Part shown: positions 653-52,010 of the stretch, in pieces
Numbering within the stretch: the first letter of the stretch is position 1
How the letters are laid out: each line of letters starts with the position of its first letter
Origin: Octopus bimaculoides
Lineage: Eukaryota
Length of the DNA stretch: 52,718 bases
Assembly: GCF_001194135.2 (NCBI RefSeq)
Contig: NC_069005.1
Location: forward strand, 22,987,819 to 23,040,536
Direction of reading: 5' to 3'
The notes under the pieces: generated by a model
Database searches by the model: none
The model's input: only the letters and a program-made list of their open reading frames with translations
Told to the model about the DNA's origin: nothing
Made by a program: the position numbers and the translations under genes

Positions 653-743
653 AATTCCTACATATGTTTCAAAATATATGTGCACTCTACTCCAAAGAAG
701 TAAGAGGTGCTGGAATTGCACATATATTCATCGTCAGGGAACC
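653..743 (-). ncRNA. Type I hammerhead ribozyme motif (Penelope-like-element type)
   Basis: Minus strand: stem I GGUUCC (743-738) / GGAAUU (658-653); core CUGACGA (737-731); 12-bp stem II AAUAUAUGUGCA/UGCACAUAUAUU; GAAA (670-667); palindromic stem III ACAUAUGU; GUA triplet with predicted cleavage between 659 and 658. Confidence 0.8.
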
Positions 744-867
744 AACATACAAAAGCAAGACATATNNNNNNNNNNATATATGTGCACTCTACTCCAAAGA
801 AGTAAGAGGTGCTGGAATTGCACATATATTCATCGTCAGGGAACCAACATACAAAAGCAAGACATAT
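674..867. other. Probable assembly artefact: identical 92-bp segment on both sides of a 10-N gap
   Basis: 674-765 equals 776-867, with N at 766-775. Similar gap-flanking duplications occur at 15219-15228 and across 46409-46908. Confidence 0.75.
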
Positions 868-1384
868 GCTAAATGTTAAGGTTACGTGCGAGTTATAACA
901 TTATGTAGCTAAGTAAGTGACCGTTAGAAACAAGAACGCTGGTTTACATAGAGTTATTAAGGGAGAGAGGCTGTGACTATATCTAGCTAAACCCAGATAT
1001 AGTCAACTCCACCATTGTCACCACGCTAGCCCGGGCTCTGTGGAGAGGAACATTGGTAACCCGAATTTTGGTTAACCGATTTATCAAGTACAGGGAGTTT
1101 ATGAACAAATCTTGGGACGTGCAAGTGGCAGTAGGCACTGTACTGAGCGCTGAATCGCTCTCACAGATAGTAACATCTGTTTCTTGTTTGCCTTTTGTTA
1201 TATATATATATCCTACTGTGGACACACTTCCTGCAAGCAGGTCTAGGATAATGTTGTTTTCTCTCATTTCTGTTTATGCATTTATGTACAATGTTTATTT
1301 TTTTCTGGTTGCTATGTATCTCTTAGGCTGGAAGTTTCTGGACTCTAGGGTGCATAATGTCATATTTATTTATTTTTTATTTTT

Positions 1385-1577
1385 TATTTTACTTGTTTCA
1401 GGTATTAGACTGCGGCCATGCTGGGGCACAGCCTTAGAGAATTTTAGTCGGATGAATCGACCCAAGACTTACTGTTTTTTTTTTAAGCGGGCTTCTTTCA
1501 GTTTCCGTCCATCAAATCCACTTACAAGGCTTTGGTAGGCCCGAGGCTATAGTTGAAGACACTCGCCCAAAGTGCTA
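1385..1577 (-). mobile_element. SINE family C (CORE-like), truncated and internally deleted
   Basis: Matches the 48301 copy: CTTGTTTCAG...GCGGCCATGCTGGGGCAC tail and CAGTTTCCGTC...GAGGCTATAGTTGAAGACACTCGCCCAA core. Confidence 0.8.
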
Positions 1578-2426
1578 ATATATATANNNNNNNNNNNNNN
1601 NNNNNNNNNNNNNNNNNNNNNNNNNNNNNNNNNNNNNNNNNNNNNNNNNNNNNNNNNNNNNNNNNNNNNNNNNNNNNNNNNNNNNNNNNNNNNNNNNNNN
1701 NNNNNNNNNNNNNNNNNNNNNNNNNNNNNNNNNNNNNNNNNNNNNNNNNNNNNNNNNNNNNNNNNNNNNNNNNNNNNNNNNNNNNNNNNNNNNNNNNNNN
1801 NNNNNNNNNNNNNNNNNNNNNNNNNNNNNNNNNNNNNNNNNNNNNNNNNNNNNNNNNNNNNNNNNNNNNNNNNNNNNNNNNNNNNNNNNNNNNNNNNNNN
1901 NNNNNNNNNNNNNNNNNNNNNNNNNNNNNNNNNNNNNNNNNNNNNNNNNNNNNNNNNNNNNNNNNNNNNNNNNNNNNNNNNNNNNNNNNNNNNNNNNNNN
2001 NNNNNNNNNNNNNNNNNNNNNNNNNNNNNNNNNNNNNNNNNNNNNNNNNNNNNNNNNNNNNNNNNNNNNNNNNNNNNNNNNNNNNNNNNNNNNNNNNNNN
2101 NNNNNNNNNNNNNNNNNNNNNNNNNNNNNNNNNNNNNNNNNNNNNNNNNNNNNNNNNNNNNNNNNNNNNNNNNNNNNNNNNNNNNNNNNNNNNNNNNNNN
2201 NNNNNNNNNNNNNNNNNNNNNNNNNNNNNNNNNNNNNNNNNNNNNNNNNNNNNNAAGGAAAACTCTTCTGCACAGATAATAAAGAAGTTGGAAAACACAC
2301 ACACCCCCACCGGTTGAAAACTGTGAAAAATACGCAAATTTTACAGAACCGAGATTAAGTGCACCTTTCCCATTAATTTCAATGATGATGATGAGGAGGA
2401 GGATGACGACGACAACAACAACAACA

Positions 2427-48716: not shown

Positions 48717-48959
48717 ATTTTATTGGGCAGCCGAAAGCTTTACGAATAGTTACACGGTTCCGATCCTCCTACGAAAAAGAAGAAAAGAGAACATTTGGAC
48801 AATGTTTAGCGGAACGCATAAACAACAGTAGAAATAGATATTGAACACTGCCTGGAACTCCTCCACATCTTTGGAAAGAAAGGATTTTGTCGGTTCGATA
48901 GTTTAAACATTGAAGACCTACAATATTAATGAATAAAAACGAAATCAATTACAGCAGAA

Positions 48960-49395
48960 ATGGAAAGGGAGGAGCATGAAGAGAAATAGTCAAGGAGGAG
49001 GAGGAGGGGAGGAGGAGGAGGAAGAAGAAGAAGAAGAAGTGGTAGAAAAAGAAAAGAGGACGAGAAAAAAGAAATAGAAAAAGAAAGAGAAAAAACAGAA
49101 GAGGAAGAAGAAAGAAGTGGAAGAAAAAAGAACAAGCAAGGAAAAGAAGAAAAGAGGACGAAAAAGTAGTAGTAGTAGTAGGAGGAGGAGGAGGAGGAAA
49201 AGAAAGTGAAGAGGAAGTAATAGAAGTGAGACAAGAAAAATTGAATAAAAAGAAGAAAAACAGGAAAATAAAAAACGAAGAAGAAGAAGAAGAAGAAGAA
49301 GAAGAAGAAGAAGAAGAAAAAGAAGAAGAAGAAAAAAGACGAAAAAGGAAGAAGAGGAGGAGGAGGGGAAGAAGAAATAGCGGAGGAGGAGAAGG
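48960..49395. repeat. Purine-rich (GAA/GGA) low-complexity tract
   Basis: Direct inspection. Confidence 0.85.
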
Positions 49396-50100
49396 GAACA
49401 ATGTAATGTTACGTCGGGGACGGTTAGACACAGACGGACTGAAATATGAATAAAATATAAGCAATATGAGAAAAATAAATATACAAAGAGAAAAATATCA
49501 TTAAAGCCATTTAAAAATGTAAACGAGACATTCGTAACAAAATATTTGCGGAATATAAAATAATAATAAGTTTTATAAATTGGTTGTAAAATGCGCCAAA
49601 ACAAAATAAAATATTGATGTGTACATGCACACACACACACACACACACACATATATATAGGATATATATATATATATATATATATATATATATATATANN
49701 NNNNNNNNNNNNNNNNNNNNNNNNNNNNNNNNNNNNNNNNNNNNNNNNNNNNNNNNNNNNNNNNNNNNNNNNNNNNNNNNNNNNNNNNNNNNNNNNNNNN
49801 NNNNNNNNNNNNNNNNNNNNNNNNNNNNNNNNNNNNNNNNNNNNNNNNNNNNNNNNNNNNNNNNNNNNNNNNNNNNNNNNNNNNNNNNNNNNNNNNNNNN
49901 NNNNNNNNNNNNNNNNNNNNNNNNNNNNNNNNNNNNNNNNNNNNNNNNNNNNNNNNNNNNNNNNNNNNNNNNNNNNNNNNNNNNNNNNNNNNNNNNNNNN
50001 NNNNNNNNNNNNNNNNNNNNNNNNNNNNNNNNNNNNNNNNNNNNNNNNNNNNNNNNNNNNNNNNNNNNNNNNNTATATATATATATATATATATATATAT

Positions 50101-52010
50101 ATCAAGATAAGCAACAGGATATCAAGTAGTAATGCAGTACGACCGTTTCAAGTGGCTCCAAACTAACAATTATAGTTATCATACTTGAACTTTGATGGTG
50201 GGAATTAATTTTGGTTTCGTATCCCGTTATAGACTTTCCCTCCAGTATAAAATAGGAAAATTATGGGATATTATGTTATATGGTGGATTATATTACATTA
50301 CATATGTTATATGCTATGTGTTGTGTTATACGGCGGGCTATATATAATATTATCCTATGATAATCCCTGCCTAGTTAGTCTGACTTCATCCTATTTTGGT
50401 GATTACTCTTTTTTCCTTTCCATGATAATCTATCCTACTAGTCATGTTATGTATCTTTGTTGTGACTTTATGAAAGTAAGTCTCCCTTTGACTAAACCCT
50501 AACCCCCTAGAAACTATAAAATCATACATACAATAACACCTGTAATATTTTAACTAATAAAACCCCTTCAGTTTGAATACCTGTAACTGTCCTCACTACT
50601 TCCAGACCTATTCCCCCCTCTTTTCAGGTTACCTTTATCTTTTCCCTGTCTCTAATTTTAATCCCCTTTCTTTTTATATGTAGGTTATATATATTTCTTA
50701 TAATTCTCTATAAACTCTTATTATTTTGTTTTTTTATTTTGATATCCTTACCTATTAACCTCTTATCCCTTATAAATTGCTATTTTCTTGTTCTTAAATT
50801 GATATTTATCAGTTATTTAGGTCAATGTAAAATACATAAGTATCTTGCATTCATATATTCATATTCATATAAGCGTATATTTGTGTATACGTATGTATAC
50901 ATATATGCACACACACACACACATATATATATATATATATATATATGTGTGTGTGTGTGTGTGTGTGTGTGTGTGTGTGTGTATGTATATATATATATAA
51001 GCCTTCTTTGTATATGTATCTATGCATTATTTTACACTTTACACATACTTATATCAGCACATATTTTTCGAGTATTTATATTTTTAATACTTTAGATTTT
51101 ATAATTTTTGTTTACATATATCTATATATTACCATTATCTCAACATCCCGCTTCTGATTCATGGCTTAAAATTAATAGATCGTTTGTATATCTTTCCAGA
51201 GCTGTCTTCATAGAAGCCACCTAATAATTAATTATTTAAGTACAAGAATGGATATTAAACTTATTCTATATAATCTTCCTTTTTATATTTATAATTGATA
51301 CATACACACTTTTTAGCTATTTTGGCAATGATATCATTTTGGAATTCATAAATTTTATTTTATACAATATAACAATATTGTCTATAAATGTTCCCCTATC
51401 ATGCTCCTAATAAATTTTGCCTGTATTAGCATCTTAAGTTTGTTTAGTATCTTGCCCCTTAACTGGTAATTAACATCATGATTTAAAGTCTACTCCTAGC
51501 TGGCTCTTTTTTATAAACAGTTACTTCTATCAAATTGACTCTTCCTAATGTTTTATTTCCTTTCTCTTAAGAAAATGGGATACCTATGATAATATTTATG
51601 ACCATACCGAGCCATAAAATCTCAACTCTCTTGTTCTTTATTCAAAATAGACACAGTCTTCTAGTCTCAGATTTAATAGATGATGAAGAGATAAATAAAT
51701 TAGAAATGAATTACCACCCTTACAAAACTATGACCCCACTATGCTCCACGCGATTCTAAGAAATTATAGTCTATTCTTAGCTACAATAGCGACAACATGA
51801 ATTTCTTCGATCTTCTTTCTCTCTTAAAATATTTAAGAAAAATTATATTAATGTGTCCTACTTCTTAAAAAATTCTATATTTTGTGCAGCTGAAGATAGT
51901 ACTGCATTTAAATTGATGTAATGATTGTATTGTTCAATTAAATGGATTCGCTTGAAACGGTCGTACTGCATTACTACTTTGATATCCAGTTGCTTATTTT
52001 GATTTTATTC
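50101..52010. mobile_element. Inverted pair of Penelope-like terminal segments about 1.8 kb apart
   Basis: 50101-50160 is the reverse complement of about 51943-52004, with an 18-nt exact core GTAATGCAGTACGACCGT; both copies carry GAAACGGTCGTA. Confidence 0.6.
51885..51970 (+). ncRNA. Type I hammerhead ribozyme motif
   Basis: UGCAG-CUGAAGA(51890-51896)-U-AGU...CAUUUAAAUUGA/UCAAUUAAAUG...GCU-U-GAAA(51954-51957)-CGGUCG-UA-CUGCA; perfect 5-bp stem I; GUA triplet. Confidence 0.7.

Follow-up and report, generated by a model that had tools for sequence, protein, structure and literature searches.

What are the hammerhead-like ribozyme motifs that lie scattered along a 52,718-nt stretch of the Octopus bimaculoides genome, and how did they come to be there? 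The stretch (NCBI RefSeq assembly GCF_001194135.2, contig NC_069005.1, positions 22,987,819 to 23,040,536 of the forward strand; hereafter the window) comprises the upstream region, exon 1 and part of an 85-kb intron of the gene for angiopoietin-related protein 1. A sequence-only reading had listed nine such motifs in it and connected them with Penelope-like retroelements. We analyzed the window together with locus L001 of a chromosome-scale assembly, which covers window positions 15371-52718 and a further 68 kb on the 3' side. Our preferred answer, which we hold to be rather probable, is that the locus contains relics of the 3' termini of hammerhead-bearing retroelements, either Penelope-type or non-autonomous and Penelope-dependent, and that these relics fall into two architectural classes, here called A and B.

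All nine stretches are present where they had been placed, and none of them contains an assembly gap. They were assessed with a descriptor of the type I hammerhead that required a helix I of at least 3 bp, the core strings CUGANGA and GAAA, U16.1 and a position H17 other than G. For helix II, at least 3 bp with 0 or 1 unpaired nucleotide on each side were demanded, and for helix III a paired 15.2-16.2 with a self-complementary inner segment. Three loci in the window pass with an exact core:

651-745, minus strand: m1, class B, intact core, recognized by descriptor match and fold.
10831-10989, plus strand: m2, element of a divergent class A subfamily, with its minimal hammerhead (min-hammerhead) at 10846-10878.
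51884-52003, plus strand: m8, class B, intact core; the ribozyme (51884-51971) and 3' terminal sequence up to the end of an inverted repeat.

The expected number of matches with an exact core and a palindromic helix III is 0.015, as estimated from dinucleotide-preserving shuffles of 1-kb blocks (n = 200), and none of the 200 shuffles reaches three. Under a stricter version of the descriptor (helix I of at least 4 bp, C15.2-G16.2), m1 and m8 still pass, against 0.00 expected. When one core mismatch is allowed, the window contains four matches (0.24 expected from shuffles), and the window plus the 68-kb extension contains eight (0.51 expected). The bare heptamer CUGANGA is not enriched in the window (17 observed, 21 expected); it is therefore the whole architecture that carries the signal. 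Natural sequence served as a further control: the descriptor matched nowhere in 72 kb of mostly cephalopod-like ENA contigs or in an 11-kb O. sinensis contig, and once, with one mismatch, in the 58-kb orthologous locus of Argonauta hians. Pooled, these roughly 130 kb of other cephalopod DNA hold no exact-core match and that single one-mismatch match. Hammerhead-like motifs are truly enriched at the O. bimaculoides locus and form a non-random cluster there. These counts, and the pairing in class B described below, bear out the proposal that type I motifs whose helix III is short and palindromic occur here more often than in dinucleotide shuffles.

The general hammerhead core (C3 U4 G5 A6 N7 G8 A9...G12 A13 A14, A15.1-U16.1, H17 not G) is complete only in m1, m2 and m8. 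It is broken by C4 in m3, by U6 in m4, m7 and a fourth class A copy outside the window, and by U3 in m5; in m6 the core is present without helices. Helix II is closed on the core by G10.1-C11.1 only in m2, while m1 and m8 form good helices I and III. Of the nine listed motifs, then, only three retain the whole core; four are incomplete copies or have a mutated core, and the following two look like chance matches:

17034-17075, minus strand: m3, rejected; core CCGAGGA, no G16.2-U16.1, helices I and II not formed.
39801-39845, plus strand: m6, rejected; CUGACGA and GAAAC co-occur, helix II has 1 bp, helices I and III are absent.

As a hammerhead, m3 was discarded since its helix III lacks the closing GU, its helix I is absent and every helix test failed. 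Both m3 and m6 look like chance co-occurrences of CUGANGA-like and GAAAC strings.

Alignment revealed that m2 and two further motifs are copies of one repeat with a unit of 140-235 bp, which defines class A:

34672-34811, plus strand: m4, class A element (nhmmer E = 1e-34), core mutated to CUGUUGA.
48069-48291, minus strand: m7, class A element, core CUGUACA.

A profile built from m2, m4 and m7 detected the fourth copy at L001 54987-55118 (E = 4e-21), 17.6 kb past the end of the window and 86% identical to m4. The class A ribozyme is a minimal hammerhead in which A9 is followed by an additional nucleotide, helix II comprises 4 bp, loop 3 is missing and helix III consists of ACGU. The homologous part of m2 and m4 begins 12-15 nt upstream of the core, and that of m7 and the fourth copy about 95 nt further 5', at a TA tract, which is short in m7. 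On the 3' side, the element extends about 95-115 nt beyond the cut site, via a T-rich stretch, to ...GTRAATTCTCCC, after which (TA)n follows, or (CA)n in m7. The common end of the copies before (TA)n can be given as ...TTTTTTGTRAATTCTCCC. In m4 the end reads ...AAATTCTCCC and is followed by an interrupted (TA)n, with (TG)n on the 5' side.

The min-hammerhead of m2 reads CUGACGA-A-GAGU/GCUC-GAAACGUU. Its core is the exact CUGACGA, followed by an extra A; helix II has 4 bp and carries G10.1-C11.1, and helix III is ACGU. Indeed, m2 has the hallmarks of Penelope min-hammerheads, namely the extra nucleotide, G10.1-C11.1 and a palindromic 15.2-16.2 (PMC4209133). Its helix I has just 3 bp, which passes the descriptor but is weak, and its cut site lies about 114 nt 5' of (TA)n at 10990-11021. 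The other three copies have U at position 6 (CUGUUGA in m4, CUGUACA in m7, CUGUGGA in the fourth copy), and their third helix II pair is broken; helix I of m4 (UCUUU/AAAGA) is intact. An intact core and an intact helix I occur together in no class A copy (n = 4). With no more than 50-59% identity to the rest of the family in the 3' part, m2 represents a separate subfamily; the notion that its core arose by chance back-mutation inside the U6 subfamily was dropped on the same figure.

There is no copy of the class A family at the orthologous Argonauta locus, and none on the ENA contigs that carry relatives of a Tc1 transposase found in the window. A scan for the exact class A pattern returned no match in IMG/VR and 11 in JGI metagenome contigs, all of them chance matches on GC-rich, apparently unrelated and probably microbial contigs.

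Two further features accompany the class A copies. A conserved block, TTCCCGAGCGTTAAAC, lies about 25 nt 3' of the cut site (34729-34744, 48133-48148 and L001 55037-55052); it resembles the 3' half of the class A ribozyme, GCTCGAAACGTTAAAG, and may be a degenerate internal duplication. Directly 3' of m4, units of about 49 bp (80-91% between units) are tandemly repeated at 34870-35167, and the array runs into an assembly gap at 35169.

Class B has the layout CUGANGA-N-[54-96-nt imperfect hairpin helix II]-N-GAAAC-N4-GUA, followed by the 3' strand of helix I, and the element ends 30-56 nt past the cut site. Its members are m1, m8 and m5 in the window, and B4 (L001 87918, minus strand) and B5 (L001 55305, minus strand) in the extension. 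The sequence of m1 is UUGGUUCC-CUGACGA-U-[13-bp helix II, 60-nt insert]-U-GAAAC-AUAU-GUA-GGAAUUAA. It passes the descriptor with 8 bp in helix I, 13 bp in helix II with U.U at the base, AC-AUAU-GU as helix III, and A at H17; no second copy of it was found in about 120 kb. The sequence of m8, GUGCAG-CUGAAGA-U-[57-nt helix II]-U-GAAAC-GGUC-GUA-CUGCAU, passes with a 6-bp helix I and AC-GGUC-GU as helix III, and its helix II is weak, with 3 bp and then bulges. The core is exact in these two, and reads UUGAUGA in m5, CCGAUGA in B4 and GUGACGA in B5. With A.A closing helix II and a non-palindromic loop 3, m5 (39634-39725) is degenerate. No similarity is detectable among the flanks of the five class B motifs; together with the separate class A repeat, this agrees with the suggestion that the motifs come from several unrelated families.

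In class B, 88% of the cells of helix I and the palindromic loop 3 are paired. Column shuffles give 64%, with none of 500 reaching the observed value, and controls with a slid 3' partner give 27-35%. Seven of 10 pairs are changed on both sides across the five unrelated sequences, a covariation that is partly circular, as four of the five were picked by the pairing descriptor, and thus supportive rather than independent. At the position where G10.1-C11.1 normally stacks, class B consistently has a mismatch of the form N.N (U.U, U.U, A.A, A.A and A.G). A complete core combined with good helices I and III occurs only in m1 and m8, both without the canonical G10.1-C11.1. Compared with Penelope min-hammerheads (PMC4209133), the characteristic pair of features is found in m2 (A and ACGU), in m1 (U and ACAUAUGU) and in m8 (U and ACGGUCGU, G.U pairs included).

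Class B motifs often lie in head-to-head inverted pairs, two of which involve the following features:

39520-39751, no strand assigned: TA-rich palindrome of 232 bp; arms 39520-39608 and 39663-39751, 88% complementary.
50101-50160, minus strand: m9, inverted partner of the m8 unit; 94% inverted match to 51951-52003.

In the palindrome, m5 occupies the right arm on the plus strand, and the minus arm is its inverted, 5'-truncated partner. The half-site that had been noticed at 39521 is this reverse-complement copy of m5. The second partner, m9, holds just the 3' half of the ribozyme and the terminal sequence of the m8 unit; it directly adjoins (TA)n at 50074-50102, from which its cut site is 36 nt away. 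With the 3' end of m8 it forms an inverted repeat of 53-60 bp with arms 1.8 kb apart. B5 is also palindromic, and its 3' end and the fourth class A copy meet the same (TA)n tract from opposite sides. Inverted, 5'-truncated partners are found in three families (m5, m8/m9 and B5), and in every case the ribozyme-distal 3' ends are outermost and the arms are joined near the 5' edge of the ribozyme.

Proximity to (TA)n was evaluated for 12 termini, which are not fully independent, using perfect tracts of at least 5 units. Such a tract lies within 150 nt of 5 of the 12 (background 7.1%; binomial calculated by hand, about 1e-3) and within 250 nt of 7 (background 10.7%). The unit formed by m8 and m9 is flanked by TA on the left and TT on the right, and the other flanks are (TA)n or TA-rich. 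The common layout of ribozyme, spacer and (TA)n that had been noticed is confirmed for a subset of the motifs.

How do these structures compare with known ones? Metazoan Penelope min-hammerheads (Cervera & De la Pena 2014, PMC4209133) have the same type I topology with a CUGANGA/GAAA core, the same unpaired nucleotide between A9 and 10.1, and the same absent or short palindromic loop 3 (ACGU in class A), which implies action as a dimer. They likewise occur as dispersed single motifs and opposite-strand pairs of high sequence heterogeneity, and are widespread as orphan motifs from truncated elements, the pairs sometimes 100-700 bp apart (PMC4209133). Their helix II typically has 6-8 bp, whereas that of class A has 4 bp. 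Class B differs from them in its helix II of 54-96 nt and in an extra unpaired nucleotide before G12, and G10.1-C11.1 is therefore not stacked on the core. Unlike in the Penelope elements of that study, an open reading frame (ORF) for reverse transcriptase (RT) and endonuclease was not found in the flanks here.

Penelope-like elements carry hammerheads near their 3' end, prefer (TA)n, and leave inverted, 5'-truncated copies beside the main copy (PMC8557442). Both the (TA)n bias and the inverted partners are present at the octopus locus. Within these elements, the Neptune and Naiad clades (Craig et al. 2021, PMC8557442) show the same insertion bias and adjoining inverted copies, and their optional terminal extensions and cephalopod remnants are also alike. 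Unlike the octopus units, Naiads are without canonical hammerheads (PMC8557442). For Poseidon PAc of Anolis carolinensis, Frangieh et al. (2024, PMC11167929) found that unprocessed RNA is reverse transcribed from a start about 85-92 nt 3' of the cut site and that insertion can proceed without an active ribozyme. This start is close to the end of class A at 95-115 nt, and insertion without ribozyme activity would let core-dead subfamilies spread. Poseidon PAc differs in being a vertebrate element with a full ORF, and (TA)n targeting is not reported for it (PMC11167929). Finally, octopus genomes are rich in Penelope-like elements, an expansion of which has been dated to about 56 million years ago (PMC8967140, PMC13282606). 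The two papers do not mention ribozymes, so that the population suspected in the sequence-only reading is poorly annotated in this respect, but the elements themselves had already been listed as abundant.

Orphan motifs, (TA)n targeting, inverted copies, the start of reverse transcription and the abundance of Penelope-like elements in octopus all match these publications, and we therefore regard the locus as a probable graveyard of non-autonomous or truncated Penelope-type termini. The link to Penelope that had been drawn before is plausible on account of the hallmarks in m2 (PMC4209133) and of (TA)n with inverted, 5'-truncated partners (PMC8557442).

Several observations weigh against this interpretation. 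The Rfam hammerhead models, which had been named as a way to confirm the motifs, match none of them: RF00163, RF00008 and RF02275-RF02277 gave nothing in the whole window at the gathering score, no hammerhead is among the best 150 of 220 whole-window matches at E <= 10, and searches at E <= 10 with 131-401 nt around m2, m5/m6, m1 and m8 returned no hammerhead family. The whole-window matches listed are only microsatellite 'miRNA' (microRNA) artefacts. Rfam hammerhead models are known to under-detect minimal variants without helix III, which were first found with RNAmotif (PMC4209133). In class A, the essential A6 is U in three of the four copies. In class B no G10.1-C11.1 pair stacks on the core, helix II is of unusual length, and the covariation is circular in part. 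The sample, with four class A copies and one copy per class B family, is small for within-family covariation and for a consensus.

The search for a retroelement partner adds to these points. Among the 150 longest stop-free segments of the window (at least 59 aa), none showed an RVT or GIY-YIG domain (Pfam); the only matches were to DDE_3 (52176-52520, minus strand), DUF7083 and noise. Nor did Pfam match any three-frame translation of the 1.7 kb that precede m8 and the 0.8 kb that precede m1. The presumed Penelope RT/GIY-YIG partner is thus not detected in these parts of the window, and with it no element encoding a telomerase-like RT and GIY-YIG in whose pseudo-long terminal repeat a motif would lie, as described for Penelope elements (PMC4209133). 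Fifteen kilobases outside the window, a GIY-YIG-like ORF (L001 52188-52556, minus strand) scores 22.1 bits, just short of the cut-off of 22.6; no RT accompanies it, and the nearest motif lies on the other strand. This ORF could be a remnant of a Penelope-like element with an N-terminal endonuclease (Naiad-type). It adjoins a fragment of an apurinic/apyrimidinic endonuclease of a long interspersed element (LINE) at L001 50679-51116 (minus strand). The missing partner makes membership in a full element less likely; it does not lower the likelihood of a Penelope origin, because most published genomic min-hammerheads are orphan motifs as well (PMC4209133).

If the relics derive from Penelope-type termini, their formation could be envisaged as follows. 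In the source element, the ribozyme would cleave itself, which in class A would need a dimer. A GIY-YIG endonuclease/RT supplied in trans would nick (TA)n and copy unprocessed RNA from a point slightly 3' of the ribozyme. As a symmetric target, (TA)n could be primed on both strands, which would yield inverted, 5'-truncated copies joined near the ribozyme. Convergent priming of this kind may well lie behind the head-to-head pairs. As for the copies present today, most are probably dead, those of class A through U6 or through a helix I of 3 bp, and to judge from their cores and helices, catalysis is unlikely for most of them.

The genomic setting was clarified with the gene record. The ORF at 25371-26060 is 99-100% identical to O. 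bimaculoides angiopoietin-related protein 1, and the gene was placed on chromosome record CM046625.1 (L001). It has two coding exons (window 25371-26039 and L001 95490-95987), and everything in the window 3' of 26039 therefore belongs to one intron:

25371-26039, plus strand: exon 1 of angiopoietin-related protein 1; the rest of the window 3' of it is a single intron of about 85 kb.
776-867, minus strand: exact 92-bp duplicate of 674-765 across a 10-N gap (100% self-match).

The supposition that plus-strand motifs lie in the intron of this gene proved right, as m4, m5, m6 and m8 are inside it. The 10-N gap (766-775) is 21 nt 5' of m1, and the 92-bp duplicate around it most likely reflects overlapping contig ends that the draft assembly left unmerged, and not a second ribozyme; m1 was therefore counted as one locus. 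A genuine tandem repeat was discarded as an explanation, given the 100% identity on both sides of the gap. The chromosome-scale assembly has the same gaps as the window.

For the palindromic units (m5, m8/m9 and B5), the main rival to Penelope-type termini are DNA transposons of the foldback type or miniature inverted-repeat transposable elements that target TA, in which the likeness to a hammerhead would be incidental or come from captured sequence. Long inverted repeats and TA-rich flanks would be expected of such elements, a Tc1/mariner transposase fragment lies about 170 nt past the right arm of the m8 unit, and the (TA)n flanks hide any target-site duplication. However, a CUGANGA-like string, a paired helix I and GAAAC-N4-GUA share one register in three unrelated inverted-repeat families, and m1, B4 and all class A copies are in hammerhead register without being palindromic. 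Moreover, the flanks of m8/m9 (TA and TT) do not form a clean TA duplication, and the junction of the arms lies at the 5' edge of the ribozyme, where convergent 5'-truncated complementary DNAs would be expected to meet. We consider such transposons an unlikely source of these units, if the most serious competitor for them.

Hardly more promising is an origin from animal non-LTR retrozymes, that is, tandem hammerhead repeats that are transcribed, self-cleaved and circularized. Metazoan retrozymes (Cervera & De la Pena 2020, PMC7229834) share the type I fold, the 2-bp helix III and the 4-nt palindromic loop with class B; U.U at the base of helix II is described for one axolotl family, and their AT-rich units of 170-400 nt are alike in size to the class A unit of about 235 bp. 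A preprint also proposes that retrozymes derive from Penelope-like elements as non-autonomous forms (bioRxiv 10.64898/2026.07.22.740005). On the other hand, retrozymes form head-to-tail arrays with contacts between loops 1 and 2 (PMC7229834), and such contacts are not evident here. Self-BLAST and nhmmer found no head-to-tail arrays of 150-450 bp; the copies are single, dispersed or inverted, and the sole direct duplicate is the 100% overlap across the 10-N gap. Copies are also found in an intron, while vertebrate retrozymes are reported to be depleted from introns (bioRxiv 10.64898/2026.07.22.740005). Since tandem arrays are absent, an origin from retrozymes fails, and the idea of retrozyme-like elements in the window was given up as improbable.

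The possibility that all motifs are chance matches, picked by eye in AT-rich and repeat-rich sequence, does account for m3 and m6, and it would fit both the CUGANGA count at or below expectation and the silence of the Rfam models. Against it stand the observed counts, which 0 of 200-300 shuffles reach, the almost empty natural-sequence controls, the class A repeat family with E-values down to 1e-34, and the covariation of helix I and loop 3. For m1, m2, m8 and the class A family, this explanation is largely refuted, and for the set as a whole it is very improbable. We find it scarcely credible that the host has selected the sense-strand intronic motifs, m8 above all, as ribozymes for regulating the pre-mRNA of angiopoietin-related protein 1. 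It is true that m4, m5 and m8 are in sense orientation within a single intron and that intronic hammerheads are known in vertebrates. Yet the motifs sit inside repeats beside microsatellites, antisense copies are as frequent as sense copies, none is present at the orthologous Argonauta locus, and the 11-kb O. sinensis contig, which spans just window positions 18459-27337, where there are no motifs, gives no sign of orthologous conservation.

The window contains other repeats. A core of about 125 bp resembling a short interspersed element (SINE) is present in at least 10 copies with 78-85% identity, sometimes as adjacent pairs, and is unrelated to the hammerhead motifs:

3001-3114: SINE-like core copy.
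10026-10147: SINE-like core copy.
10245-10366: SINE-like core copy.
16341-16411: SINE-like core copy.
17153-17277: SINE-like core copy.
17968-18091: SINE-like core copy.
43921-44026: SINE-like core copy.
44097-44218: SINE-like core copy.
45690-45809: SINE-like core copy.

An interspersed repeat of about 390 bp (26346-26737, 45083-45483 and L001 74835-75230; 90-95% identity) is common to O. bimaculoides and O. sinensis (L005 1948-2333 and 7122-7501) and appears to be a young or slowly decaying family. The transposase fragment near m8 is the C-terminal part of a Tc1/mariner DDE_3 transposase at 52176-52520 (minus strand), whose closest relatives, 70-82% identical, are on ENA and JGI contigs; two ENA contigs with such relatives have little else in common with the window. 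The DUF7083 match, in one of the 150 longest stop-free segments, has an E-value of 7e-16. ORF fragments at 3400-3650 (plus strand; '...KPLHGQY...' and '...KAETEGFILAAQDQ...') resemble the C-terminal part of ORF2 of a LINE. The sub-threshold Rfam 'miRNA' matches (mir-3149, mir-297, mir-466, mir-568 and others) all fall on (CA)n, (TA)n and (TGTA)n microsatellites, including 50897-50976, 42858-42926, 47363-47433 and 34557-34657, and are low-complexity artefacts.

With regard to its significance, hammerheads on Penelope-type termini are already known from other animals, and the octopus is a new host. The finding extends the link between hammerheads and Penelope to cephalopods; in octopus, Penelope-like elements are counted among the major repeats, and 30 Penelope families are annotated in O. 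vulgaris. For the host gene, it means that a single intron harbours several relics of ribozymes, most of them dead, with no indication of a regulatory function. The class A unit (about 140-235 bp) and the class B foldbacks are units with which part of the repeats now labelled 'unknown' or 'unclassified SINE' can be annotated. Head-to-head pairs that meet at the ribozyme between (TA)n flanks preserve a compact natural record, from which one could learn how GIY-YIG/RT enzymes prime on symmetric targets.

Only the architecture of class B has some novelty. Its very long helix II, obligatory N.N mismatch and 2-bp helix III with a palindromic tetraloop may, as a speculative and rather doubtful reading of the sequences, mark an undescribed hammerhead variant, with some copies catalytically competent, carried by abundant non-autonomous Octopus retroelements that target (TA)n and form foldbacks. 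If so, host pre-mRNAs would be cut by sense copies in the long introns of neural genes, or such copies would give rise to small RNAs of structured or circular form.

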